DNA from: Paramicrosporidium saccamoebae KSL3
Lineage: Eukaryota > Fungi > Cryptomycota
Assembly (NCBI GenBank): GCA_002794465.1
Contig: MTSL01000205.1
Coordinates: 129,810 to 161,809, forward strand
DNA: 32,000 bases
Reading direction: 5' to 3'
In this document: positions 539 through 28,660 of the stretch, in pieces
Layout: each line of letters opens with the position of its first letter
Numbering within the stretch: position 1 is the first letter of the stretch
Translations under genes and position numbers: made by a program
The notes under the pieces: model-generated
Database searches by the model: none
The model's input: the letters and a program-made list of their open reading frames with translations, nothing else
Told to the model about the DNA's origin: nothing

Positions 539-1630
539 ATGACTCCTGAAGATAGCACAACAGCCAGCTACACATTCCAAACAGACAGAAAAGTCGCACT
601 ACTCACCGGAATCACTGGACAAGATGGATCCTATCTTACAGAGTTTCTCTTGGCAAAGGGCTATGAAGTGCATGGCATCATTCGTCGCTCCTCCTCTTTC
701 AACACGGGCCGACTTGAGCATCTGTACGCTGATCCTCACACCAAGCCCAAAATGTACCTTCACTATGGTGACTTGACCGACTCTTCCTGTCTCGTAAGCA
801 TTATCAGCCGAGTGAAGCCTACTGAGGTTTACAACTTGGCTGCCCAAAGCCACGTAAAAGTCTCCTTTGACATGGCTGAATACACTGGAGATGTCGACGC
901 TTTGGGTACCCTCCGTCTTCTTGATGCCATTCGTACTTGCGGAATGTCTGACAAAGTGCGCTTCTACCAAGCGTCAACCAGTGAGCTGTACGGCAAGGTG
1001 GTTGAGACTCCTCAGAAAGAGTCCACCCCATTCTATCCCCGCTCCCCATATGGTGTGGCCAAACTCTATTCTTACTGGATCGTTGTTAACTATCGAGAGG
1101 CATACAACATGTACGCCTGCAATGGAATCCTATTCAACCACGAGTCACCTCGTCGTGGCCGCACCTTTGTTACTCGTAAGATCAGTCGGGCTGTAGCCGA
1201 GATCTCCCTCGGCCAGATCCCATGCGTTTACCTTGGAAACTTGGATTCCCGCCGTGATTGGGGCCATGCTCGTGACTACATTGAGGGAATGTGGCTTATG
1301 CTGCAACAAGATAACCCCGACGACTATGTACTCGCCACAAATGAGTGCCACTCTGTTCGCGAATTTGTCGAAATGGCCTTTGATGTTGTGAATGTAAAGA
1401 TTACCTGGGAAGGAAAGGACGAGAAGGAAATTGGCAGAGATCAGGATGGAAATGTGCGAGTTCGTGTTGATCCTGCCTACTATCGTCCAACCGAGGTCGA
1501 TCTATTGTTGGGAGACTCTACCAAGGCCCGTAAGAAGCTGGGATGGATACCAAAGTGCTCGTTCCCTGAACTCGTTCGGGAAATGGTTCTCAGTGATATT
1601 GACTCGGCTAAGCGTCGTGACCAGCAATAA
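539..1630 (+). CDS. GMD: GDP-mannose 4,6-dehydratase, intronless
   Basis: Rossmann motif [54 protein letters not shown] (YxxxK), [19 protein letters not shown]. First ATG is at 539; the track ORF starts at a TTG at 524. Confidence 0.96.
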
Positions 1631-1832: not shown

Positions 1833-3185
1833 ATGTTGGGGGGACGGAATAACGGCACCTCAAATATGAGGACAGTGTACTCATTTCCCGAGTTGCGAAA
1901 TGTTGAAATATTACAGTGCATGGAAGACTTGCGGATCCCGCTGAGTGAAGCTGAGCTTACAAAGCCTAGCACGGCAATCGTTCAGCGAATTTTTGAATCC
2001 TTTGCGGACATTTTCATGGGAATTAGCAAGGAACAGCTCGGACAACAGCCGACATTTCAAGTGGTCGAAACTTTAGAACATCCGGACTTGCACCTTGACT
2101 CTATAAATCTAGTGGCCTTTTATCGTTTATTGCTGCGGCTGATGATTGAAGTTGGAATTGAAGACTTTTCCTTGCGAGACTTGATCAAGCCCGAAACTCC
2201 TCGTCTTAGGATAATACTCTCGGCAGTAATCAATTTTGCAAAGTTCCGAGAGGAGCAATTATCAGTGTTTGAAGAATTTTCACGACGTGGAGAGGAAGCT
2301 GTTGAGCAACGGGTGAAGCTATCCAAGCGGCACGAAGAGCTAGCTGTCAGAATTGCACATGTGAAGGCAAAACATCGAGATGAAGAGCCGGCAACTCTCC
2401 AGCTAAAAGACGAAATGGCAAACATGATTCAAATTCTCCGAGATTTAAAGAAAGAACAGACCGCCCTTTCTGCCGAATTGGATGCTTACAAGTCTCGTAA
2501 AAGCGAGGTTTCAGAAAAAATGGCGCAGACGCAATTCCTGCTGGGGAATGTGAAGCAGGAATGTAACAAGCTGAAATCGAGAATTGTCCACAGTCCCGAA
2601 AAGCTCTTGCAAATTATAGCCGAGATGAATGCCAGCATTAATAATGAAAAGACCAACCTTTCACAGCTTGAGAAGCGTTCTCGCGAGCTCCAAATGAAGC
2701 TGGAAGCGTTGGCGCATCTTGAGCAAGAGTTGCTGCGTACTCTACAAGGAATGGAGTCCTTGAATGGAGACTTGAGAAAGAGGGATGAGTTGCTTTCTAA
2801 GGTTCGGGAAGAACGAGATGCAATTGAGCGGCAACAGATTCTGGCCAAGGACCTCTCCATCAAGGAGACCCAAATAATCCGACAGATGAATGCTGCACAG
2901 GATAAGGTTTCTCGCCTGCAGCGATCTCAACAAGAGCGGCGTGACAATATGGGCTTGCGATTAAAGACGCTCCAAGAAGAATACCAAGTTGTTGCCGAAG
3001 ACCGCAGTAGAGCAGCCAGCAAAATTGAACAGAGCGATAAGCTTGTAAAGGACTTTGAAACTCGAATGGGTGAGCTGCGCCGTAGTCATGAAACAGAAGT
3101 GGCATCGATGCGCACCGAATGTGTTGCTCTCAAAGCCCGTGTTGTTTCATATACTAATGAGATGAAGAAGCATTTAAAGTCTTAA
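1833..3185 (+). CDS. NUF2: Kinetochore NDC80-complex subunit Nuf2
   Basis: N-terminal Nuf2 CH-like region (YSFPELRNVEILQCM, FSLRDLIKPETPRLRIILSAVINFAKFREE) followed by a long coiled coil containing RIVHSPEKL. Alternative start at ATG 1866. Confidence 0.9.
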   Translation: MLGGRNNGTSNMRTVYSFPELRNVEILQCMEDLRIPLSEAELTKPSTAIVQRIFESFADIFMGISKEQLGQQPTFQVVETLEHPDLHLDSINLVAFYRLLLRLMIEVGIEDFSLRDLIKPETPRLRIILSAVINFAKFREEQLSVFEEFSRRGEEAVEQRVKLSKRHEELAVRIAHVKAKHRDEEPATLQLKDEMANMIQILRDLKKEQTALSAELDAYKSRKSEVSEKMAQTQFLLGNVKQECNKLKSRIVHSPEKLLQIIAEMNASINNEKTNLSQLEKRSRELQMKLEALAHLEQELLRTLQGMESLNGDLRKRDELLSKVREERDAIERQQILAKDLSIKETQIIRQMNAAQDKVSRLQRSQQERRDNMGLRLKTLQEEYQVVAEDRSRAASKIEQSDKLVKDFETRMGELRRSHETEVASMRTECVALKARVVSYTNEMKKHLKS

Positions 3186-3258
3186 AAGTAGTGAAGTTTG
3201 ATAAATATTTTACTTGTGTGTGCGTGTAGGGGAGGAGGAGGGAGGGGGGTTTGAAATA

Positions 3259-3280
3259 GGGTAGCGGCCTATAAGGCGCC
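3259..3280 (+). repeat. Half copy (a) of the dispersed TATAAAG element
   Basis: GGGTAGCGGCCTATAAGGCGCC matches the core of the copies at 7347-7416 and 27197-27266 with a 1-nt deletion; the second box is absent. Confidence 0.6.
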
Positions 3281-3360
3281 TTGAGAATATATATCGTCGA
3301 CTTGCGGAGTTAAAGTAAAAGACCCTCTATTCGTATCCTGGTCTGTAGTTGTACTATCTC

Positions 3361-3422
3361 ATATTGATGAGCGAATTGATTTTATTAAAGTGTATGGCTT
3401 CTTTATAAGCAGTCATCCTTAG
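3361..3422 (-). repeat. Copy (b) of the dispersed TATAAAG element
   Basis: Minus strand reads CTAAGGATGACTGCTTATAAAGAAGCCATACACTTTAATAAAATCAATTCGCTCATCAATAT and aligns with the 27197 copy CTGAGGATGATGGCCTATAAAGGCGCCACATACTTAATAGAAC. Confidence 0.65.
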
Positions 3423-3595
3423 TACGGCTGGAATGACTCGTGAGATTGCTATCCGCGTTGGATCTACCAATGATACACGGATGCTGTTTAACGGCCCTTT
3501 TGATGAAACCACTCGCTCTCACTCTCTCGCACTAAAGGCCCCTTTATTCTTGATCAGTATATATGCTATACTCACTCATGACTTGTAATTGTGCT

Positions 3596-5764
3596 CTACA
3601 GATTATACTGTCGTATTGCATTCAATAAATTTTGGGTTCCTCGAAGCTGTTGATCCAAATAAGAGACTGTAGTCTCAATTTGGCATCGGAGTAGATCCTT
3701 CTCGGCTCTAAGTTGCCTCTGCTGGTGTAACGCCGACTCAAAGCGCGCCGCTAGGCTCAGTTGATGCTCGGTCAACCTAGCACGTGCCTGAGACTCTAAA
3801 AGTCTAGCGGGATTGGTCACCCATAGATCGGAGCTTATGACATGACTATAGTGATTAACAAGACGACTTCGAACTATAGACTCCAGGTCCCCAAGAAGAA
3901 CCAGAAGGGCAGCTCCTCCGGTAGCGACAACAAGAGAAATGGTTACAATCTTGCCAGCACTTCGTGACAGGTCAAAGACGCGAAGAGCAAGTGAAAATAA
4001 GTGCTGATATCCAAATGTAGCTCCAGCTATGGTGGCCGCGCTGAGCCAAGTTGATCCACGCAAAAGAAGTGAAACATCAAGTAGATCCAAGACGGCAATC
4101 TCGGGGATTGGGTCAATAAGGGACTCGTAGCTTGGAAATGCCAATTCGCACGATACGTCCTCATTAGAAACCAAATTAAAGACCTGTCTGGCATGTGCGG
4201 TTGCAACGCCATTCAAAAGATGGACTCCTTCGTAAGTGTTGGCAATTGCAAGCTGGCGAGCATCTCTCATCCATAACATTGCTTCCTGATGCAGTTTGGT
4301 GCGTACTAAATCGTTAAATTTCCAAATGTAGATGATCCCATTCCACTTTGACTCATAGACGATAGAATGTATCTTTTCAAACTTTGTCAAGTGTGTCTTG
4401 ATGTGATCATACAAACTTTGGCAAATCTCATCTAGAGTACGTCGGAGGTCTGCCTGAATTATGCCGTGATGGGCCATTAATTCTTCAAAGCAAGGGGCGA
4501 TTATATCCAATTCATGCTGGAGCCTGTTCAAGTCTTCAAAGCGGCGCTTGCGGTTATTGTCTAGGACAATGAACATTTCATTCAACAAAAGCTGGAGATA
4601 TGTTTGGGCAGGGAGAAGTTTAGATTTGGTCCGCTTCTCCAATATAAAGTTTCTCAGACACCTTTCCACCGATTTAAAGTCTTCGTGGATTCTAAACGAA
4701 TCCCCAATGTCTCTAGTCTCCACTGAAGAAGCTGACATTGGCGAGGCAGGATCGAAATTGCTGCTGCTTACTTGCTTAAAATACTGCCCGGCACTGATGA
4801 AATGTATCAACTCGGATCGTTCTTCATATGTCTTGGGCAGCACTTCCTGGATTTGGGCCAATACAATTCGCTTACATTTATCCTGGTTCTTGATATCGTC
4901 AAATTTGTTCACAACAACAAATATATAGGCTTTCTCATGGCTGGCAGTCTCCAAAAACTCGCGTGCACTCAAAGTCAAATGATTTGCGGCATTAATGAGG
5001 AACACTATGACATCAATGTCTTCTTGCTTTGAAAAAAGGGCCATAGTCTTAAAAAGGTCACTATTGAGACCAGGAGAATCAATCAGACTAACTTCAATCT
5101 GAGAACACTGAGCAAAGGCATTCACGTCGTCCTCTAAAAGGACTCGGAATAACTGGTAGCTCGATTCTTCGTCTTGAATGCACTCTTGCATCTTCGAAAT
5201 GGTCATCTTATCATACGTTTGAGGATTCTCCGAGTTGTAGATACTATAGTCTGCCATTGCATGGACACAAAACTCATCACGGGAAAAGGCATTCCGGACG
5301 GGGACTACCTCACAGAAACATTGAGTGCAAGGCTGCTGATCTGTGGGAAGTAAATCTTTTTGGAGCAAGGCATTAACAAACGTGGATTTTCCAGAATTCA
5401 CATCGCCAGTGACCAGCACTTTGCTACATTTGTCTCCAACTCGGCCATGGAGTCTCTCCAGGTATGAGATACATTCGCCTAGTCGATTTCCCATCATTCT
5501 TGCCAAAGTAACCTCATCCATTTCGCCCTCACGAATGGACAACTCGTCAGGTAGGGCTAGAAGCTTCAAATCTCCAGTCTTTATTGTTCTCATTGCAGAC
5601 TGGCCACGGCCGTGTTTTCCGTCACTCGAAATGGCCCCACCACGAGGATACAGCAAAGAAAACTTTTCTGATATGTGAGCATTGTAAATCGACTCTAAAA
5701 GCGTTCTGCTTTGCTGAATGTAAGATAAAATGCGAGCCTGCTTGTCAGAAAAGTTCTCAGACAT
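3596..5764 (-). CDS. FZO1: Mitofusin / Fzo1 dynamin-related transmembrane GTPase
   Basis: G1 GDVNSGKSTFVNALL, LLPTDQQPCT, G3 LIDSPGLN, G4 VVNKFD, hydrophobic C-terminal hairpin and terminal coiled coil. Confidence 0.9.
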   Translation of the reverse strand: MSENFSDKQARILSYIQQSRTLLESIYNAHISEKFSLLYPRGGAISSDGKHGRGQSAMRTIKTGDLKLLALPDELSIREGEMDEVTLARMMGNRLGECISYLERLHGRVGDKCSKVLVTGDVNSGKSTFVNALLQKDLLPTDQQPCTQCFCEVVPVRNAFSRDEFCVHAMADYSIYNSENPQTYDKMTISKMQECIQDEESSYQLFRVLLEDDVNAFAQCSQIEVSLIDSPGLNSDLFKTMALFSKQEDIDVIVFLINAANHLTLSAREFLETASHEKAYIFVVVNKFDDIKNQDKCKRIVLAQIQEVLPKTYEERSELIHFISAGQYFKQVSSSNFDPASPMSASSVETRDIGDSFRIHEDFKSVERCLRNFILEKRTKSKLLPAQTYLQLLLNEMFIVLDNNRKRRFEDLNRLQHELDIIAPCFEELMAHHGIIQADLRRTLDEICQSLYDHIKTHLTKFEKIHSIVYESKWNGIIYIWKFNDLVRTKLHQEAMLWMRDARQLAIANTYEGVHLLNGVATAHARQVFNLVSNEDVSCELAFPSYESLIDPIPEIAVLDLLDVSLLLRGSTWLSAATIAGATFGYQHLFSLALRVFDLSRSAGKIVTISLVVATGGAALLVLLGDLESIVRSRLVNHYSHVISSDLWVTNPARLLESQARARLTEHQLSLAARFESALHQQRQLRAEKDLLRCQIETTVSYLDQQLRGTQNLLNAIRQYNL

Positions 5765-5971: not shown

Positions 5972-7323
5972 ATGCGTATTCTTCCCGCGGCGATTGTAGC
6001 TTTTGCCGTCCACACTGTTGACGCATTTGACTTGCAACCCTTTCCGAAGCTCAAGATAAATCCAGAGGTCATCCCTTCCGAGTCAGGGACAAGAACCTTT
6101 GCCGACGTTCGTACTGATTCTTTCCTAGTAGACTGGGAACCGTATGAACTTGACATACAGGAGCATCTCCTATTAGATGTAAGGCCCTCCCATTACATAC
6201 TCATCACTAGACTGCAAGAGAGGGCTTAGTCACTGACAAGCAAACACTTTTGGTAAAGGGAAATGACGGCATTGACCACGAATGTTTCCTCCCCGTCGAT
6301 AATGACCATGGCATTTCTTCCGAAGCCGGAGCACTCGATGCTCTTAATCATCCGGAGGCCTACGTGATTAATACTGAAAAAGTAAGGAAAACCTGCATGC
6401 ATTTGGTAAATTCTCAAGAGAGTGTTCATATTATATAGCAAGGAGGATATTGGACGTATGAAGTTTGTCCTATGAAGCATGTCCGCCAGTATCACCGTGA
6501 CAAAAAAAAGGCTTCGCTGGGAATGAAGGTCTTTGATCTTCCAGACGCCTCCCAAGGTCTACTCGGAGGGGCCTTTGGAGATGTCGTGCAAGCCATGATT
6601 GGACGTGGAGAACAAGAAATTATCACAGACGAATATCTTCTTGGCCGCTATATACCCGAGTCAGAGGACGATCGGATGGTCAATGGCCAACTGGTTCAAC
6701 ACTATATTGATGGTGACAGATGCGCTGATATGGATTCTCATCCTCCGCGGCAAGTAGAGGTGCGATATGAATGCAGCTTTGCCAAAGCAATGGATCACAT
6801 TATTGATGTTACAGAAATATCTTCGTGCAGATATTTCGTCCGTATTGGTAGCCCGGGCGTTTGCGATCCGGCTTTGAAGTCTCAGCCGTCAAAACGCACG
6901 ATCCACTGCTACCCGCTTTCAGTATCCGCGGCTTCAGGACACCCCGTTGAAAGCGATACAGGTTTGGAGTCCTCGATCCAAGTCGAAACGCCAAGGTCTA
7001 GTGACAGCCCGCCCGTAAAAGTAGAGAACAAGAATAGACGATTTTGGAAGCAACGTTTACGTGAATTTTTGACACACGACGGGCACGATTTCCCCCTCAT
7101 TCACAAATTCCTCAACGAGTTCATGGAGGCCGAGCATATGAACATGCCGAATGCCAATGATGATCTTCCTGACCGTCTGGTTCAAAAATGGTTCGCTCTA
7201 TTGGATATTGATCCTGACAGGTCTAAAGCAAGCAGCGCCGCGAAAAACGAACAAGAAGAAAGTGACGAGGACAGGAAAAAGTCGGCATCTAAAACAAAGG
7301 TTGTCTTTAATTTGCGACTGTGA
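5972..7323 (+). CDS. OS-9/Yos9-like ER lectin with MRH (PRKCSH) domain; exons 5972-6178, 6211-6405, 6439-7323
   Basis: Signal peptide MRILPAAIVAFAVHTVDA. Two GT-AG introns (6179-6210, 32 nt; 6406-6438, 33 nt) join three ORF pieces into TCMHL|QGGYWTYEVCPMKHVRQYH...GDRC...RQVEVRYEC...VTEISSCRY, the MRH signature. Confidence 0.85.
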
Positions 7324-7346
7324 GTAAACATTGTGTGGTTATACTA

Positions 7347-7416
7347 AAGACCCTGTTGATGGACCGAGAAGATGTCTTGATGGAAGCATGTGGCGTCTTT
7401 ATAGGCCGCCACCCAG
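7347..7416 (-). repeat. Copy (c) of the dispersed TATAAAG element
   Basis: Minus strand: CTGGGTGGCGGCCTATAAAGACGCCACATGCTTCCATCAAGACATCTTCTCGGTCCATCAACAGGGTCTT. The 24-nt core is 22/24 identical to 27208-27231. Confidence 0.8.
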
Positions 7417-7477
7417 CACACCGGATCGTAAGATAACTGTCAGGACCGCCAGTCATAAGTAGACACTATTTGTCTAA

Positions 7478-7543
7478 CAAACCCTGTTGGTGAACAGAAA
7501 AACTGCATTGATTAGTGGCGACGTCTTTATAACTCTGCCCTCA
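7478..7543 (-). repeat. Copy (e), diverged tandem duplicate of (c)
   Basis: Plus strand accctgttggtgaacagaaaaactgcattgatt...cgtctttata aligns with accctgttgatggaccgagaagatgtcttgatg...cgtctttata about 130 nt upstream. Confidence 0.65.
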
Positions 7544-7635
7544 ATAAAGCAGATCCCTGATTCGTAGTAGATATACTTTCGCAAATATCATATTATGAGT
7601 TTATTATTGCACTACTAACTTACTACTGGACTGTT

Positions 7636-9339
7636 TCAAGCGGAAATAATTGTGCACCAATTCTCTTGGGGAATCCATTTTAATGCCCCCTGGCTCAATA
7701 TCTCTCGAATGGCCTGGATCACACTGTAAGATTGGCGACCTGCATTAGCGCCTGTACGACCATTTCGTCCACGTTGCAGCTTGAAAGAGGATCGTGAATT
7801 CTCAGAAGCTACATCAGCACAAAAATCAGGTCCAAGTAGAACCGAGGGCTGCCCATAAATTCGGAGAGAATAGTCAATCACCAAAGCAATGACAAAGTTA
7901 TCAGAACTACGGTTCAGCCGGTATTGAGGCAGGTCGCCGAAGAACGATTTTTTAAGATCGATCAAAGTGTAGCAGTCTTTATACGCAGAGAGGACATTCT
8001 GCAGATCAGCAACAGAAACCGTCAAGCTCATGTTTTGATAGCGCGAGATGACTCTATCGTCCTTCTGTTTGTACATTGCAATAAATCTCGACACAATGTA
8101 GTTAGTCCGGGTAGGTTGGTAATTATTGGCATCCATATCCTGTTTCCTGGTGTCAAGAAACAACGACTGTGTGCGAGCACATCGAAGCTTATACAAATTC
8201 TCAATAGTAAAGTTTGGGAGCTTTGTTCTATCCGCCTTGAGGATCCGACAGAGAGCCATCTCATCAGATGCAAAAATTACCCTTGCGACTTTTCCAGTGA
8301 TTTCAGCATTTCCAATTCCTTCGAAGAGTACAAACAGATGCTCTGGATACAATACGGGAATCTGGCCTATCGAAGCAGGGCTTAGTGGATTGGCTTTAAA
8401 TTTACGAGTCCAAGCAATGACCATGTCGACAAATGTTCTGGCCATGCGTTGCCATGGAGGGTCCTCATTCCAAAGTGCTTGAACTGAGTTGCTGAACACA
8501 GTTTCATCGGCTCCACTGCCATGAATAATATGAGATACAAAGAACAGGAGCTTTGATTGTGCTTGTGACCTGTTTTTCTGAACCATTCGGCTCATAGTCG
8601 TGCCAACGTTAGCTAATTGGGATAGCTTGGTCTGGCAAATAATGCTGAGATAATGGATAAGACCATAGATTGATATGTCGCTGGTTTCAATACTTTTAGC
8701 CACGGCTTGCGAAAGCGGTGAACCATGACTCAAGTTCATTCTTACATCAAGCCCTGATGCAAAGTCAAAGTCTGCCGATGCTAGTGTGTCGGGAACAATG
8801 GCTGCTGGTATTTTTCTAAGCCAAGCTGTCACTTCGGGATGCGTCGGGTTGCAGCGTGCCAGTTTTGCAATATGCTCAGACTGATTGGTGGTGTTTAATC
8901 GCCGCTTGCGGGGATCCCTCTGATCAGTAGATGGTAGGGAAATTTGGGTATACCCAAATTCAATAAAGTAGCCTTCCACAGAAGCTCTTTCGGCAAGTTT
9001 TGCTACGCAGGATACACGACCAAAGAAATCATGTAGCAGCCAAGGAGTCTTTGATAGCATCGACATAATCTTCAAGATAGTGTCTCTATCAAACTTCTTA
9101 CACAAAGCCTTTCCGGGGAACAAATTTATCGGTAAAGCTGACAGAGTGTGAATGAATTTGGGAAATCCTGCGTTGTAGTCTGTAGATTTGCTAATGGTAG
9201 TCCAGAATTGTATCAAGGACTCTTCTTGCAAGCATTTTGCGATACGATGCACGTCTGTCTTTATAGTAATCGATAAAGAGTGGGCTATTAACAGAGATAG
9301 AAGCACTCGATATACTTTTGCATTCAGGAGACAAAGCAT
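7636..9339 (-). CDS. Hypothetical 567-aa protein, no family recognised, possible N-terminal signal peptide
   Basis: Uninterrupted 1.7-kb ORF filling the gap between genes; hydrophobic N-terminus RVLLSLLIAHSLSI. Confidence 0.75.
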   Translation of the reverse strand: MLCLLNAKVYRVLLSLLIAHSLSITIKTDVHRIAKCLQEESLIQFWTTISKSTDYNAGFPKFIHTLSALPINLFPGKALCKKFDRDTILKIMSMLSKTPWLLHDFFGRVSCVAKLAERASVEGYFIEFGYTQISLPSTDQRDPRKRRLNTTNQSEHIAKLARCNPTHPEVTAWLRKIPAAIVPDTLASADFDFASGLDVRMNLSHGSPLSQAVAKSIETSDISIYGLIHYLSIICQTKLSQLANVGTTMSRMVQKNRSQAQSKLLFFVSHIIHGSGADETVFSNSVQALWNEDPPWQRMARTFVDMVIAWTRKFKANPLSPASIGQIPVLYPEHLFVLFEGIGNAEITGKVARVIFASDEMALCRILKADRTKLPNFTIENLYKLRCARTQSLFLDTRKQDMDANNYQPTRTNYIVSRFIAMYKQKDDRVISRYQNMSLTVSVADLQNVLSAYKDCYTLIDLKKSFFGDLPQYRLNRSSDNFVIALVIDYSLRIYGQPSVLLGPDFCADVASENSRSSFKLQRGRNGRTGANAGRQSYSVIQAIREILSQGALKWIPQENWCTIISA

Positions 9340-9550
9340 GTCGTTGAATGGAAGGTGATTTGGCCGATTTGGTGCGGTTTAGTGCGATTTAAGGGCACAA
9401 TTTACTAAATCAGGAAATCAGATTACATCAGATCGGAAATATACGGGATTATAAGTAATGGCCTTTTATTGAGATTCCCGGACCGTGCGCATTTTCTCAT
9501 AATATACAACTTTATTTAATTCTGATGTGACTTTTGCAATGTTCGCAACT

Positions 9551-11879
9551 TTAGTCGAGCAAAGAAGGCTCATTAGTACCCTTCCGAGATGAGACGTCGT
9601 TTGAATTTCCCGGAGCTACGGATGAATACTCGACTTGACTCGCAGAGGGTTTGGAAGGGGTGATTTTTTCAGAATCGAATCTATCATTCGATCGTCGATT
9701 TTGGCGAAAGCTGAGCTTCTCAATTAGGTATAGTTGCCCTTCTTGGCAATCAGCCGAATATGCTTCCCTTTTAAACTTGTCTCGTTCATCTAGGCGCTCG
9801 TTCGTAAAAGTTGTGACCCGGTTGCAAACCTCTTGGGCTTCTTGACGCAAGTCGGCCATACCTTCTCCAATAATCCTAGAATTAGGGAATTCTAGACAAA
9901 ATTTACCTCAACTGCTGTCTTGTTTCTTCGTAAGAGGCTCTGATATGTGATAGATGTCTACATGCTTCCTTTTCTTCATACTCTGTCTCTGCCAACCCGC
10001 AGTCCTTGACCAAGTCTCCCCATTCCGAAACAAAATCGCTCAAAGTTTGCTTATGTAGCCCGGCGTTATCCTCAATATCTTGGCAGCAGTTATCAAATTT
10101 TGACATTTCCTGATGAAAGAAAGTAGACATGTCTTCCGGCTTGATTTTGTAGATTGAGTCACTTATGTCATCCGCCAAGATTGCTCTTTTCAGTTCCTCT
10201 AACGCAAGACCCCTTTTTTTACTAAGACCCTCCAAGTCTGAAAGTTTCTCGCAGAGCCGGTGTAGCACAGAATGCAATTCAGGGCGAGGTGCTCTGCTTT
10301 TCGTCTTGGGAACGTCGCTACTATCGGTTCTGGCTTGCAATGAAGAGTCTACTTCAAACAACTGATTCTTGAGTTTAGCATGCAAACTTTCAAGCTTCGA
10401 TAATGCTAGGAAGAAGGTCGAGTTTCCTACATGAGATGGAACCTGCTGCCATGCTTCTCCATGAGTCACACGCATCTTTTGGTACTCGCGAATCTCCGTG
10501 TCCAATAACTCGCCAGTCTTTTCTATCATCGACACTGCCATGCTCAGATCTGTATGTAGTCTATCAATCTCGTTTTTCATTACTTGCTTGGACTCTGCTC
10601 CTCTGGGACTCGCGATATCAGTGATGCTCTCACCCTTAATCAGCTTTGTTACTTTTTCGAGGACTGTGGGGAATCCGAGGGATGAAAGGGCGGTCTGCAG
10701 ATCATTGTCTGCATTGGTGACCTTTAAACTTTCGTATCTCAAGAGTTTTGATTTTTCTTCGCTGTATTTTGAAATTTCTTCGTGTATCCGAATGGGCATG
10801 AGTCGCTTGAAAAGGTCGGGCTTCTCGGGAACCCGCGTGAAGCATTCTGAAATTTCCACCAACTTGACTAGGGGAGCGCACTCTGGTTGCGCCAGGTTCT
10901 CAACAGAAGGGACGTTTTGATTGTAAATTAAATTGTTCTCCTTGTCTAGATCGATAGAGTATGATTCGGAAAGATCACGCAGTTTAAGGGCATACTGCCC
11001 CACATCCGTTTCACCCAGGGAGCCGTGGGTAACCAGCATTTGATTGACAATACGAAATCTGCATATTGCTTCTCCAATTCGAGAATCATTATATGCTGAA
11101 AGACCTAGGCAAAAATCTTTGATTGCTGTCCATGCTGCCTCTTTAAGAGAGAGCTGTGAAGCAGGATCGGTATCCTCATCCTTGGAATCACAAAAGTAGT
11201 CCCTAAATTCTCGCAACTCTCCGCTAGAAAAGTTTGTATATGCATCGTGAAAAAAATTAGAGGCTGCTGCCGCGAGACGGGCCAGAATTGCAGGTGACTT
11301 GCCATCCTGGATCGCCTTTAAAGTGGCCACTTCTTGCGCCTGGGCCAGCATCAACGAAGACAGAAAAATCAGGGAAGATCGGCCAATGTCCACTAGAGGA
11401 GGATGTAGAAAATTGTCAGCAATAAAAGAAAACACAGAGGCAGAAAGCTGTAGATGGCGGACAGTATCATTCAAAGACTCGATTTGACTGAAGAGAGCCC
11501 CGAGATTGAACAAGACATTTGCCTTTTCAAAGGCAACACTGCTCTGCTTAACACAGTTTCCACGATCAAATGCATCAAACCACAGAAAACTGATGGTTAG
11601 AGGATGTTCCGCTATATCAATCCTCTTCACGAGAGCCTCTAACTGTCGATAATAGCTTACAATAATGTCAAGTCCTCCGGAGGTTGACGGTGCTCCACGC
11701 AAGTCTTGGCGCATTTTATGGAACTGGTTGCTTTCGCCCTGGAATGTCGCAGGATCCTCGCCGAGTTGTGAAAGAGACAATTGAAGTTGATGTACCCAGT
11801 CCGCCTCATTGGTGATCTTACAGGGTACAGCAATTCGTTCGAAACTGGCCGGAATCGGAAGAGTGGGTGTCAGCACCAT
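9551..11879 (-). CDS. BRO1/ALIX-family ESCRT-associated protein (Bro1 or Rim20 type); intron 9876-9906
   Basis: Bro1 domain motifs (FLWFDAF, SVAFEKANVLFNLGAL, LMLAQAQE, KENNLIYNQNVP) and V domain (RIHEEISKYSEEK). A 31-nt GTAAAT..CTAAT..TAG intron fuses the 658-aa and 102-aa ORFs in frame. Confidence 0.87.
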
Positions 11880-16105: not shown

Positions 16106-16504
16106 CGACTACCCCGGACATGTCTACAGCGAGTATTTAAGTTTCGCCCATTTACGGCATCTAAAGTGCAGATACAAGATCCTTGTTAAAAATATGGGGG
16201 GCATCATATGATGGTATGCTATAAATAATATAAAGTATTTAGCCGATACTATTTCATTGGCATTACTGCGTCGGTCTCGGAAGCCACAAAGGGTTCACTG
16301 CACTGAGACAATTAGGTTTGGGATAGCTAAAGTCAGAATGGCTTCTCAGTAGGAAATTGGAGTTATCAATGTGTCAACTGTGTGTCCTCGCACCATAATT
16401 CATGATCTATAACAGAATATCGAATAGTGTGTGAAATTGATAGATTCCGTTAGCCAGCACACCAGCTTTGTTTATCGGCACTAAAATTCCCGGGGAAGCG
16501 AAGA

Positions 16505-25315: not shown

Positions 25316-27049
25316 TTAATTCAGTTTATTAACTAGACTACAGCCGACGGGTAGTTCTCTAATCGCCCGGTCGTATAGCAGGGCAGCTTCTGAGAAACGT
25401 TTCTGAGAGCGTTCGAAACGAATAAAGTCTGCCCATAGACTCTCGTCTTTCTTATCCAGCATGAGAGCGGCATTAAAGAGCTTGCGGACCTGTAGTTCAT
25501 CAACAGTGCCGCAAAGCTCCATTAGTATCCAGTCCCGATAAAACTTTGCATTAACAGTACGTTTAGCGGAGAGCGCAATACAAAGGGATCGAGCATCTGA
25601 CAAACCATATAGTTTGCGAAACTGACAGAGTATTTCCTGGAAACTTTCTGCAATGACATGCCTCGAACCACCAAGCGCCTTAAGAAGGAATTTCAGAGAT
25701 TGCTTCGCCGTGATTCCCTTTGATACAAGGATCCATTTAGAACACAGATGTGACAGCAATTCATCGCGACGAGACTCTTCTGAAACCTTTGAAATGTTTA
25801 GTAGGATATTCTTCAAGTGTTCATAGTTAGAGCAGTGATCAATGCTAGAACGGATGGTGGCTACAGTGACATCAGCAGATGCGGGATCCATCGTTCTCAT
25901 CCGGTGTAAGACGCCCTCTCTTGATTCTGAAGTATAGCCCAGTTCATTGAATAGCGAGACCCATCTAGCATATAATGCAGGGGTCAAAATTTGCTTTTCT
26001 TCTGCCAGCATAAAAATTTGGTCAACTTTGTCACAAATGACAGTCTGGATCTCACCTTGTAGATCAGCTTCGACCATTTTAGGGATCTCTAAGAGAAAAT
26101 CTACGCAAACATTCAGTAAGGAACTGGTAGGGGCTGATGCAAAGGCCTCATCGAGAATACCCAAGGCAATCTGAAGGGCATCGGGGGTGAATCCTTGACA
26201 AAGTGCTTCTTGTACAAAAGATTTCAGAAATGATGCATCTCGGAAATGAATGCTAAGGTACGTTGAACGGATATGCTCATAGACCTTGGCGAATTCTGGG
26301 TACCTTGCAGCAACATTCATAAAATGATGAGCAACGGCCGGTCCAAGGGTAGCGATAGATTTTAGTGCATGATCGAAAATCAAAATTGCCAACGCGCCAG
26401 AAAGCACATTTTCATCTTCGTCAACAGATGAATCGAGGTCCCCCAAGCCAAGCAGTTGCCGTCGTTCTTGGACTTTTTTCGCAAAGTCAAGCTCTAGATC
26501 AAAGAATGCCATCCATAATTCAGGGCAACCGGCATTAATACGGATAGCTTGCTGGAGCAGGGTCCTAGATGCCACCATATTGCCTCGTATTTCCCATTCA
26601 AACTTTGCAGCCATAATCCAGAATGGATGGTGAAGAGGATGATGCTGAATAGCCTTTGTAATGTTCTTTGAAAAAACCTGCCGACCACCCTGTAGGAGGG
26701 CGTACTCCAGAAACTGTTTCCAGAGGGACACTTCTCCCTTGAACTTTACCAAGGCCCGCTGATATAGGCCGTAGACGTGCTGGACAATGGAGTAATTGCT
26801 TAGAGAACTGCGACTCTTGATGGCAAGCTCAGAAGTGCGATCAAGACGCTCAGCCTCGAGCTGCTTTTCAAAGTCGATATACCCAAGAAAGTCTTCAAGG
26901 ATGGCTCCTCGGCGCTTCAGCCGATATTCAAACTTTGTGCGTCTAGATACAATATCTCGGACCTTTTCCTCAGAGAATATGCCCTTTTTGGAGAGCTCTT
27001 GAAGTTCTGGGAGCCTAGCCTCCAGGTGGAGCTGGACTTGTTCGGCCAT
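25316..27049 (-). CDS. UTP6: U3 snoRNA-associated protein 6 (HAT repeats)
   Basis: MAEQVQLHLEARLPELQEL...IFSEEKVRDIVSRRTKFEYRL.RR...DFLGYIDFE, LYQRAL.KF...LWKQF, WIMAAKFEWE...ASRTLLQQAIRIN...LWMAFFDLEL. The real start is probably ATG 27049, not 27181. Confidence 0.9.
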   Translation of the reverse strand: MAEQVQLHLEARLPELQELSKKGIFSEEKVRDIVSRRTKFEYRLKRRGAILEDFLGYIDFEKQLEAERLDRTSELAIKSRSSLSNYSIVQHVYGLYQRALVKFKGEVSLWKQFLEYALLQGGRQVFSKNITKAIQHHPLHHPFWIMAAKFEWEIRGNMVASRTLLQQAIRINAGCPELWMAFFDLELDFAKKVQERRQLLGLGDLDSSVDEDENVLSGALAILIFDHALKSIATLGPAVAHHFMNVAARYPEFAKVYEHIRSTYLSIHFRDASFLKSFVQEALCQGFTPDALQIALGILDEAFASAPTSSLLNVCVDFLLEIPKMVEADLQGEIQTVICDKVDQIFMLAEEKQILTPALYARWVSLFNELGYTSESREGVLHRMRTMDPASADVTVATIRSSIDHCSNYEHLKNILLNISKVSEESRRDELLSHLCSKWILVSKGITAKQSLKFLLKALGGSRHVIAESFQEILCQFRKLYGLSDARSLCIALSAKRTVNAKFYRDWILMELCGTVDELQVRKLFNAALMLDKKDESLWADFIRFERSQKRFSEAALLYDRAIRELPVGCSLVNKLN

Positions 27050-27196
27050 AAAAGGGACCCCTGCAAAAGCGATCTCTACTTGTGAAATAGTATTTCTGCT
27101 GACCGAAGATTTTAATAAAAGGTCTATTGAACAGTATCCACTTATCATCATTAGTAAGCTTGACCGATAGCGACCCCACAATCCATCCCTGTCACG

Positions 27197-27266
27197 CTGA
27201 GGATGATGGCCTATAAAGGCGCCACATACTTAATAGAACTAATCCCGTTCGTTCAACGAGGTCTTA
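27197..27266 (+). repeat. Copy (d) of the dispersed TATAAAG element
   Basis: CTGAGGATGATGGCCTATAAAGGCGCCACATACTTAATAGAACTAATCCCGTTCGTTCAACGAGGTCTTA; both boxes align with copy (c). Confidence 0.8.
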
Positions 27267-27286
27267 GCATTAATCTCACAATCTAT

Positions 27287-28660
27287 TTATTCATAGTGAC
27301 GCAAACCATAAACCAGGACATGTCCTTTGTCGTTGCCAATGGCCAACTTGTCTCCAAGCGGATTGATAGATAGAGCGCCGGCACGAAAGACGGGTGTCTT
27401 GTCTTTAGGCCAATTGGAGAATACCCGCCCAGTCCTCATATGCACTATTCGAACTGCATTTCTACGCTCATTGCTTGCAAAGATCATAAGCTCTGAGGAG
27501 GGATGGAAGCCAATGTAGGTGATCTTGGTTGTTAGATTCATCAAACTCTTGATCGGCTTGACGGTATTAGCATCAGACTCCAGAATTTGTGACAGTTCAT
27601 AAATACAAACGACCCCGAGATTAGACCCAACACTCAGATAATATCCGTCCGGAGACATTGCTAATGCTGTACAACAGGTTCCGGATTCTTCGCAGATCAC
27701 TTTAAGACAGCTACAATGTTGCGTCTCCCAGATGTAAATTTTGTTGTCGGCACCAACTGAAAATAGATTGTCTCCCTCTTTTGAGAACACAAAACTTGAC
27801 ACTGCAGCATTCATTTGGAGTGTTCCATGGAGTTGAAAGGTTTTTGTAGACAAAATGACTATAGATCCTCCTTTTCCTATCATTCCAACAAAGCGCCCGC
27901 ATGGAGAGAATTGAATATGGGTCCAAGCCTTTTCTTTTCGTCCCGGAATCATGGTATACTTATCCACTCTCTTCTCGACAATGTTCCATACAATAAATCC
28001 TGCCGATGCCCCAGTTATCATCACCATCCGGCCGTCAGCTGAGAATTTCGCATCCAAAATATCAAATCCTTCAACTTTTAGAGACAAAAGGCACTTATTA
28101 TCCACTCCATTCACCTCGAATACCTCGGCTTTTCGGCTTTTACTAGCCACCAAAACCCATGGCTTGCAGGGATGAAAGTCCAGGGCAGCGACGGCGCCGC
28201 TGGATGGTTGTGCAAAATTGACATTTCTATAACGCCGTAGCCCGATCAAGTCTGGCAGTAGACTTGATCTTTCATCAGACTTTCGGGTCTTTAGGATAGA
28301 AAAGGGGCTTTCAGAGTCGCTGTTTAATTCGTCCTCGTCATTTGAGCTAATGTCGGCCCACTGGGGTCGAGGATGGAGTTTTTCAAACTGGTCTCTGAGA
28401 CGCTGACTATACGCTTGCCCCGAGACACTCTTTTCAGATGCACAAGTCCTCAGTTTCTTGCTTCGATTCTGTGTAACTAGACAGACCTCTAACGGTTCGT
28501 CATCTTCGTCTACCCATGCTGCCGAAGGGCCGTCTCTGCTCCCCTCTAGAGACGTAGCATGTCCAGGCACTTTGTCACCAGTATCAATATAGAATATCTA
28601 AAGTGTAAGTGTATCAAGTGGAGATACCGTCGAGCCATCCTCAAGTGAACCTCCAGCCAT
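27287..28660 (-). CDS. UTP18: U3 snoRNA-associated protein 18 (WD40); intron 28598-28627
   Basis: IFYIDTG, AAWVDEDD, YSQRLRDQFEKLHPRPQWA, WD40 repeats, HPSSELMIFAS...NAVRIVH...VFSNWP, AIGNDKGHVLVY. Start is ATG 28660 or the in-frame ATG 28702. Confidence 0.9.

Follow-up and report, generated by a model that had tools for sequence, protein, structure and literature searches.

A two-box repeat in three intergenic spacers

The DNA analysed here (henceforth the window) is a stretch of 32,000 nt, the final 32 kb of the 161.8 kb contig MTSL01000205.1 (GCA_002794465.1) of Paramicrosporidium saccamoebae, which a review table lists as a rozellid living within amoeba nuclei. The genome paper, in its statements on gene content and repeats, gives a genome that is 76% genic with 0.53% repeats, mostly simple or low-complexity (PMC5701793). 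The window itself is compact nuclear DNA (G+C about 45%), with genes including Nuf2 (open reading frame, ORF, 1833-3185, which the contig encodes residue for residue), a dynamin-like GTPase, an OS9-like lectin, BRO1, Utp6, a Utp18-like WD40 protein, an actin-family protein and RPL35; ARAGORN found no tRNA genes in it. Our subject is a short repeat marked by the word TATAAAG and located in three spacers between these genes. Two of the spacers are convergent (3186-3595, between Nuf2 and the dynamin-like gene, and 7324-7635, after the OS9-like gene). The third (27047-27286) is head-to-tail, between the stop of the Utp18-like ORF and the start of Utp6, both on the minus strand, and is also the region upstream of Utp6. 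An initial annotation, made from the letters alone, had described the copies as lying just beyond gene 3' ends, mostly in convergent spacers. This holds for the 7 kb and 27 kb loci, but the copy at 3361-3422 sits in mid-spacer, about 175 nt from either gene, and convergence applies to two loci and not to the third.

Each full unit has two conserved boxes, box 1 holding TATAAAG (CTTTATA on the other strand) and box 2 a GTTGA-like word. The features, with the strand on which TATAAAG reads, are the following.

7347-7416, minus strand: full unit, the gene-proximal one of the tandem pair after the OS9-like gene (covariance-model match 7337-7427)
7353-7356 with 7363-7366: box 2 hairpin of that unit
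7390-7394 with 7405-7406 and 7410-7412: box 1 hairpin of that unit, CTTTATA loop at 7397-7403
7460-7476, no strand: palindrome TAGACA...TGTCTA between the tandem units
7478-7543, minus strand: full unit, the distal one of the pair (model match 7472-7555), 128-131 nt from the proximal copy
3361-3422, minus strand: full unit in the Nuf2/dynamin-like convergent spacer (model match 3347-3433)
3423-3520, minus strand: degenerate second unit of the 3 kb locus, with a box-2-like word GGCCCTTTTGATGAAAC at 3490-3506, 129 nt from the first
3259-3280, plus strand: half copy, box 1 only (GGGTAGCGGCCTATAAGGCGCC), in opposite orientation
27197-27266, plus strand: full unit beside the Utp18-like ORF (model match 27186-27275)
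27100-27196, plus strand: degenerate second unit of the 27 kb locus, toward Utp6, with a box-2-like word at 27127-27143

The four full copies and the half copy were found where the initial annotation had placed them, with TATAAAG at 27212(+), 7403(-), 7531(-) and 3407(-) and TATAAG of the half copy at 3270(+), and their similarity is well above chance. Local-alignment scores of the 62-70 nt units, tested against 2000 shuffles, were 39 for 27212 with 7403 (shuffles 12.5 ± 2.2), 34 for 27212 with 3407 (13.1 ± 2.3), 26 for 7403 with 7531 (12.0 ± 2.1) and 23 for 7403 with 3407 (P = 0.0005). The weakest pairs, 7531 with 27212 and 7531 with 3407, reached only P = 0.03-0.05, the copy at 7531 being the most diverged; overall divergence among the copies is about 30-40%. 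The two best cores, GGCCTATAAAGGCGCCACATACTT and GGCCTATAAAGACGCCACATGCTT, share 22 of 24 bases at a distance of 20 kb, exactly as had been claimed, and this core pair (7384-7414 with 27201-27231) is the longest inverted repeat of the whole window. The spacing between the boxes, previously put at a near-constant 38-42 nt, measures 42, 39, 39 and 38 nt from the GTTGA-like word to CTTTAT in the four copies. The tandem units are indeed separated by the palindrome at 7460-7476, a stretch weakly similar to the corresponding one at the 27 kb locus (P = 0.05).

The half copy is a less secure member of the family. Against a box-1 profile it gives E = 7.7e-5, but it is itself one of the five sequences building that profile, and against a four-copy profile that excludes it the value is only E = 0.06. 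A possible weak box 2 (CCTGGTCTGTAG) accompanies it near 3338-3349. Just upstream (3208-3240) there is a GT-rich run followed by a purine-rich tract, GGGGAGGAGGAGGGAGGGGGG.

Two small hairpins and a longer, dimer-like unit

When the four units were aligned in the direction of the upstream gene (the sense strand), RNAalifold returned two small helices. Box 2 forms a 4 bp stem, CTGT/ACAG in the copy at 7531, TCGT/ACGA at 27212, TCAT/ATGA at 3407 and, containing a single mismatch, C(T)GT/AC(C)G at 7403. The box 2 hairpin of 7478-7543 is perfect (CTGTT[GGTG]AACAG), and that of 3361-3422 reads CTCAT[ATTG]ATGAG. Box 1 forms an interrupted 5 bp stem around a CTTTATA loop (stem GCTT/AAGC at 3361-3422). 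Over both helices 94% of cells are paired and six of the nine pairs show compensating changes. When pairing partners were shuffled, only 1-3 of 500 trials equalled the real alignment in its share of paired cells, its number of compensated pairs or its covariation score, and the signal collapsed when partners were slid by 1-3 columns. Because the structure was derived from the same alignment, we added a column-shuffle control, in which 1000 trials averaged 0.4 compensated pairs and never gave six, and 1% of them attained the energy of the real alignment. The covariation hinted at earlier for the stems around TATAAAG is thus supported and extends to box 2, on the basis of four sequences and two helices of 4-5 bp whose structure was taken from the alignment itself. 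On the TATAAAG strand the box 2 helix alone was recovered, with five pairs, three of them compensated, a result reached by 8.9% of shuffles. Neither strand of any of the four units folds more stably than its shuffles (minimum free energy z-scores from -1.40 to +0.89).

The repeat also proved larger than the 65-70 nt originally assigned to it, as about two units are present at every locus and about 130 nt are common to two of them. The 27 kb and 3 kb loci align across this distance, and the stretch past box 1 scores 26 on its own, against 13.6 ± 2.2 in shuffles. Since box-2 words repeat at each locus with a period of 123-131 nt (3361 and 3490, 7348 and 7479, 27266 and 27143), the ancestral piece was probably dimeric and some 190-250 nt long. 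Of the two units, the one nearer the gene has kept its sequence better, except that neither has been lost at 7 kb. A further extension of homology, spanning the OS9-like and Utp18-like stop codons (P = 0.0075), was discarded: orthologs share the Utp18 C-terminus YGLRHYE, so that the coding end is native and the extension probably a chance match.

Relatives, further searches and neighbouring gene models

Loci studied beside the window carry L-numbers, L001 being the 8 kb of contig upstream of it and all others coming from relatives, so that about 40 kb of P. saccamoebae DNA (the window and L001) and about 120 kb from relatives were covered. Nuf2 homologs in public assemblies are 64-90% identical. 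The Nuf2/dynamin-like convergent spacer is 410 nt long in the window versus 79-137 nt in five relatives (L002, 88 nt; L003, 137; L007, 80; L010, 79; L023, 87); in L005 it has 332 nt and is filled with other repeats, among them about five tandem copies of CCCGGCGAACCATTGT (3130-3215, plus strand). The Utp18-Utp6 spacer, 240 nt in the window, has 61 nt in both L021 and L022, with the conserved flanks TATGAATAAATAG and ATGGCCGARCAAGTCCAGCT. After the OS9-like gene, where the window has two tandem units, no copy was found in the collinear relative L023, which has the same order of Nuf2, dynamin-like, OS9-like, 592-residue gene and BRO1, and whose contig comes from the same sample as an 82%-identical Nuf2. 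From these comparisons the element at all three loci looks like a gain in the P. saccamoebae lineage.

Gene order around the spacers varies among the relatives. L021 is collinear with the window, as is L023. The genes that come after the OS9-like one in L003 are, in order, an Fe-S biogenesis gene, actin, PIG-P, RFC and a GTPase, a block that in the window sits 7-17 kb away and inverted, with one breakpoint at or near the repeat-bearing OS9-like spacer. The long spacer after the OS9-like gene of L023 contains, by eye, an apparent small cysteine-rich ORF (3940-4110, plus strand; ...CHFCSKFQHVDDSCLCTDCKLVFCYICSMQS) without a gene call on that strand.

Scans with a profile hidden Markov model and a covariance model, filters off, detected no further copies in the window and the 8 kb of contig upstream of it. 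In the relatives they gave a single marginal match, L005 1326-1388(-), with E = 0.02-0.04, in a non-orthologous spacer and with the core hairpin replaced by 8 nt. The scan that had been proposed as a check has, over the roughly 40 kb and 120 kb covered, yielded this marginal match and nothing more; the family may be somewhat older than the gain in this lineage. Beside the L005 match, at 1260-1325(-), lie degenerate telomere-like CCCTAA units (ACCCTAACAC...ACCCTAATAC). A 20-mer of the core had no exact match in the metagenome collection, and nine metagenome matches to the two-box pattern were set aside as chance, none of them fitting the model.

A match to a known RNA family had been named as one of the outcomes that would refute the initial annotation. 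Rfam gave none at gathering score anywhere in the window, and a permissive scan of the loci returned only noise (the best matches scored 22.3, 17.6 and 15.1 bits where 40, 50 and 44 are required). The statement that no named feature fits is upheld. For the Pol III B box GGTTCGANNCC no word with two or fewer mismatches was found, and for the A box TRGCNNAGTGG there were two chance-level words only. Terminal inverted repeats do not bracket either the unit or the dimer, the candidates being of 9-13 nt, with 77-90% complementarity and at unrelated positions. Direct repeats flank the 27 kb unit (9/10) and the 7 kb dimer (9/11), where about one per spacer is expected by chance, and the one at 7 kb overlaps sequence homologous to the interior of the 27 kb copy. 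Several other candidates were rejected by eye: a CArG/MADS box CC(W)6GG and a histone 3' stem-loop followed by ACCCA each fit one copy only; for a selenocysteine insertion sequence (SECIS), two of the three genes end in TAA and the ends are conserved; the loops do not match Rnt1 AGNN tetraloops; PAC/RRPE motifs match poorly; and tandem 128 nt units with undefined ends argue against a solo long terminal repeat.

Gene models next to the repeat also drew our attention. The Utp18-like WD40 ORF (27287-28570, minus strand; 427 codons) is 48-50% identical to JGI and NCBI Utp18 and ends in YGLRHYE; it is missing among the gene calls of the contig, a homology search returned no P. saccamoebae protein, and it is probably an unannotated gene. 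Utp6 as called (611 residues) starts at 27151, inside the second unit of the repeat. The Utp6 start of a relative, ATGGCCGAGCAAGTCCAG, aligns with the window ATG at 27046 (MAEQVQ...), and judging by this alignment the annotated N-terminal 35 residues are probably not real. The OS9-like call (5972-7560, plus strand; 387 residues) ends at TGA 7558-7560, past both tandem units; the long OS9-like ORF stops at 7321-7323, within CTGTGAGT, which resembles a 5' splice site. Rebuilding this model with one upstream and one downstream intron gave no solution, and its 3' exon may be a prediction artefact. Beyond the same spacer, a single 1280-residue gene is called at 7636-11879(-) over two ORFs, 7636-9339 and 9903-11879 (BRO1). 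Its counterpart in L023 consists of separate genes of 592, 128 and 681 residues, and the call may represent a fused gene model. A run of G closes the contig (31989-32000), possibly an assembly or sequencing-end artefact.

Origin of the repeat and its likeness to known elements

We put at roughly one in two the probability that a small, non-autonomous, hairpin-forming repeat left these copies, which are now decayed and tolerated in 3' intergenic DNA. The reasons are the diverged copies, their tandem, truncated and possibly inverted arrangement, the insertion-like spacers, the lack of coding capacity and the lack of an RNA family. Decay is visible in the half copy, in the degenerate second units and in the core-deleted marginal copy of L005, and the sequences behave as interspersed repeats in occupying several unrelated loci and varying in presence between related genomes. 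The initial interpretation is supported in part. Of the origins it proposed (a promoter, a putative terminator, insulator or replication-origin element, and a relic resembling a short interspersed nuclear element, SINE, or a miniature inverted-repeat transposable element, MITE), the relic fits best, the copies being lineage-specific, insertion-like, truncated, tandem and possibly inverted. Strictly defined, the repeat is neither MITE nor SINE. Tests for terminal inverted repeats and for A/B boxes found none, and the direct repeats seen are not convincing as target-site duplications. No named family matches it, and the genome paper's statement on repeats lists no such family (PMC5701793). As a kind, short hairpin-forming interspersed repeats are already well known.

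As a decayed repeat, its core unit would measure about 70-90 nt and consist of two small hairpins at a fixed distance, the box 2 hairpin with a stem of 4-5 bp and the CTTTATA/TATAAAG hairpin with one of about 5 bp; together with the second, more decayed unit about 125-130 nt away at all three loci, it would form a composite of about 190-250 nt. The family may have spread as a non-autonomous mobile element dependent on its hairpins, or else through ectopic duplication, its copies surviving in 3' intergenic DNA where, in a 76%-genic genome, insertions would be least harmful. TATAAAG would be a conserved loop sequence of the element and not a working TATA box, and the stems would owe their compensating changes to selection on the hairpins of source copies. 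Such hairpins are expected if the source copies needed them for spread, as do bacterial repetitive extragenic palindromic (REP) sequences, Helitron ends and mitochondrial double-hairpin elements. Copies just past a stop codon are probably transcribed within the 3' untranslated region (UTR). A lack of function in the copies is something that we infer, whereas the family, its compensated hairpins and its absence from orthologous spacers are observed.

Several points weigh against this reading. A genome-wide family is not demonstrated, the three loci lie within 24 kb, and local duplication explains the same data; the 0.53% of published repeats implies that the family is either small or was missed. 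Spacer-length differences cannot separate insertion here from deletions in the relatives, and weak core-like motifs follow the OS9-like ortholog in L003 (ATGGCCTTTTTATAGG, P = 0.03) and in L020 (ATTAATATGCTGGCCCTTTTATA, P ~0.01 in that one spacer). There are no terminal inverted repeats, and the flanking direct repeats are at chance level and inconsistent between loci. Two sharply conserved boxes with a variable spacer and compensated stems are equally expected of a functional cis-element, and at two of the three loci the unit begins 20-25 nt past the stop codon in the same orientation.

These last points lead to the strongest rival, unlikely in our view, namely that the repeat is a sense-strand RNA module of the 3' UTR or terminator, or a protein-binding 3'-UTR element, whose copies spread by duplication. 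Such a module would be laid out as hairpin 1 (YYRU-loop-AYRR), about 23 nt, and hairpin 2 with a (Y)CUUUAUA(R) loop, and would serve mRNA 3'-end formation or termination, for instance by presenting a UUUAUA-type UA-rich signal. In its favour are the stronger pairing on the sense strand (nine pairs with six compensated, against five with three) and units that start 24 nt past the OS9-like stop and about 20 nt past the Utp18-like stop, even if the 3361-3422 copy is 176 nt from the stop of Nuf2. None of these three host genes has an AATAAA within 160 nt of its stop, whereas five other window genes have one within about 50 nt; still, only 3 of about 17 genes in the window carry the repeat. Weak box-1-like hairpins after the OS9-like orthologs of L020 (GCCC[TTTTATAT]GGGC, P ~0.01) and L003 also favour it, but the core-like motifs of L003 and L002 are not significant against the box-1 profile (E = 7.5 and 18). 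The element is, moreover, absent after the same genes in relatives, the 61 nt Utp18-Utp6 spacer being too short for it and L023 having none, and stems of 4-5 bp are thermodynamically marginal, with whole-unit z-scores that are not significant.

Somewhat more doubtful is a working two-hairpin module of a reduced rozellid genome, transcribed at gene ends, that shapes mRNA 3' ends, blocks read-through between closely spaced genes or starts antisense transcripts. It would multiply by placing copies of itself in further 3' spacers, and its compensated stems would express current selection on function and not the past of a mobile element. If true, this would be a rare self-propagating 3'-end module in a eukaryotic nucleus, the nuclear counterpart of bacterial REP sequences and bacterial interspersed mosaic elements (BIME).

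We consider improbable the promoter that the initial annotation had placed first, in which TATAAAG binds the TATA-binding protein, box 2 is initiator-like, and short non-coding or antisense transcripts are driven into the 3' end of the neighbouring gene; as a variant, the 27 kb copy, in the other orientation, could be the TATA element of Utp6; the conserved start codon of Utp6 is about 165 nt away, downstream of this copy. All four full copies carry a perfect, unvarying TATAAAG, the distance between their boxes keeps to 38-42 nt, and two further instances of the word in the window, at 16229(+) and 12538(-), fall in likely real promoter regions. However, the invariance is partly an ascertainment effect, because TATAAAG served to recognise the copies, and the second units and the L005 copy are without it. 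Downstream there is no ORF, Rfam family or stable structure, the pairing is stronger on the opposite strand, compensated stems flanking TATAAAG and a variable loop length fit a hairpin better than a duplex protein-binding site, and relatives have no element at the same genes.

There is also a slim chance that nothing mobile was ever involved, and that one intergenic segment was copied within 24 kb by purely local segmental duplication or gene conversion. All copies lie within that distance on one contig and the 8 kb before the window has none, repeats are very scarce as far as the genome paper's repeat statement goes, and two metagenome scans gave nothing real. This explanation has difficulty with copies that are about 30-40% diverged and occupy three separate spacers in both orientations with no flanking gene sequence co-duplicated, and with the marginal copy at a different locus in a relative.

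Last, a family of small-RNA genes (C/D-box small nucleolar RNA, snoRNA, or another structured RNA) in short tandem clusters is largely refuted and very improbable. In its favour, box 2 on the sense strand has words resembling UGAUGA (TTGATGA, at 3364 and again at 3500), the elements draw C/D matches from Rfam, all very weak (snoR128, E = 8.9; snoU83, E = 3.2; sR20, E = 1.6), and the tandem spacing of about 128 nt resembles polycistronic snoRNA clusters. Against it, neither strand of any of the three spacers has a C box, even with one mismatch allowed, that is followed by CTGA as D box 50-120 nt further on, the words nearest to a C box are degenerate (TGATGG, TGGTGA, TGAACG), all Rfam matches are far under gathering scores, and the lack of an exact metagenome match to the 20-mer core argues against an rRNA-complementary guide.

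As it stands, the decayed hairpin repeat is a modest finding of an ordinary kind. Its interest lies in the setting, as the P. saccamoebae genome is, on the figures given in the genome paper (76% genic, 0.53% repeats; PMC5701793), among the most compact of the fungal lineage. A hairpin repeat family not described before would be a sign that the intergenic spacers of this genome are still being shaped by short mobile or duplicative DNA, and the repeat makes two of them three or four times as long as in relatives. It also bears on annotation, since the NCBI models of the OS9-like gene and of Utp6 run into the repeat and the adjoining Utp18-like gene is uncalled.

Set beside known systems, the repeat differs from a Helitron terminus, in which a subterminal hairpin lies about 10 nt before a 3' CTRR end and insertion occurs between A and T. 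Here box 2 is followed by TTAG instead of CTRR and then by T, C or A as the next host base, and homology between two copies runs past that point. The yeast UA-rich polyadenylation efficiency elements, reportedly UAUAUA and the TTTTTATA ascribed to Henikoff and Cohen 1984, are echoed by the sense core YCUUUAUARG located 55-75 nt past the stop of genes without AAUAAA, but for a poly(A) signal a hexamer suffices, whereas here about 24 nt and a second box are shared and most window genes lack the repeat. With a Pol II TATA core promoter it has in common a perfect TATAAAG in a G+C-rich context and a second conserved box about 40 nt away; unlike one, it has no downstream transcription unit, lies in convergent spacers and holds TATAAAG in a hairpin loop with compensated stems.

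Like our repeat, MITEs and related non-autonomous elements are short, non-coding, diverged, intergenic near genes, able to fold back, truncated, clustered and variable in presence between species. They differ in their terminal inverted repeats and target-site duplications, the former absent here and the latter not above chance, and the present boundaries, at three loci, are undefined. The mitochondrial double-hairpin elements of Allomyces and of chytrids and the repetitive hairpin-forming elements of sponges also place two short hairpins in scattered spacers. These elements are tens of nt long and keep their structure while the stems vary, and mobility is suspected for them. We know of no sequence likeness between them and our repeat, for which no comparison was run, and ours lies among nuclear genes (Nuf2, Utp6, Utp18-like, BRO1, actin-family). 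Finally, bacterial REP and BIME elements are prokaryotic and owe their mobility to RAYT transposases. No homology is implied, the analogy being one of form and placement only, in that these too are small imperfect palindromes past gene 3' ends, often between convergent genes, occur singly, in tandem or inverted, and share a transcript with the upstream gene.

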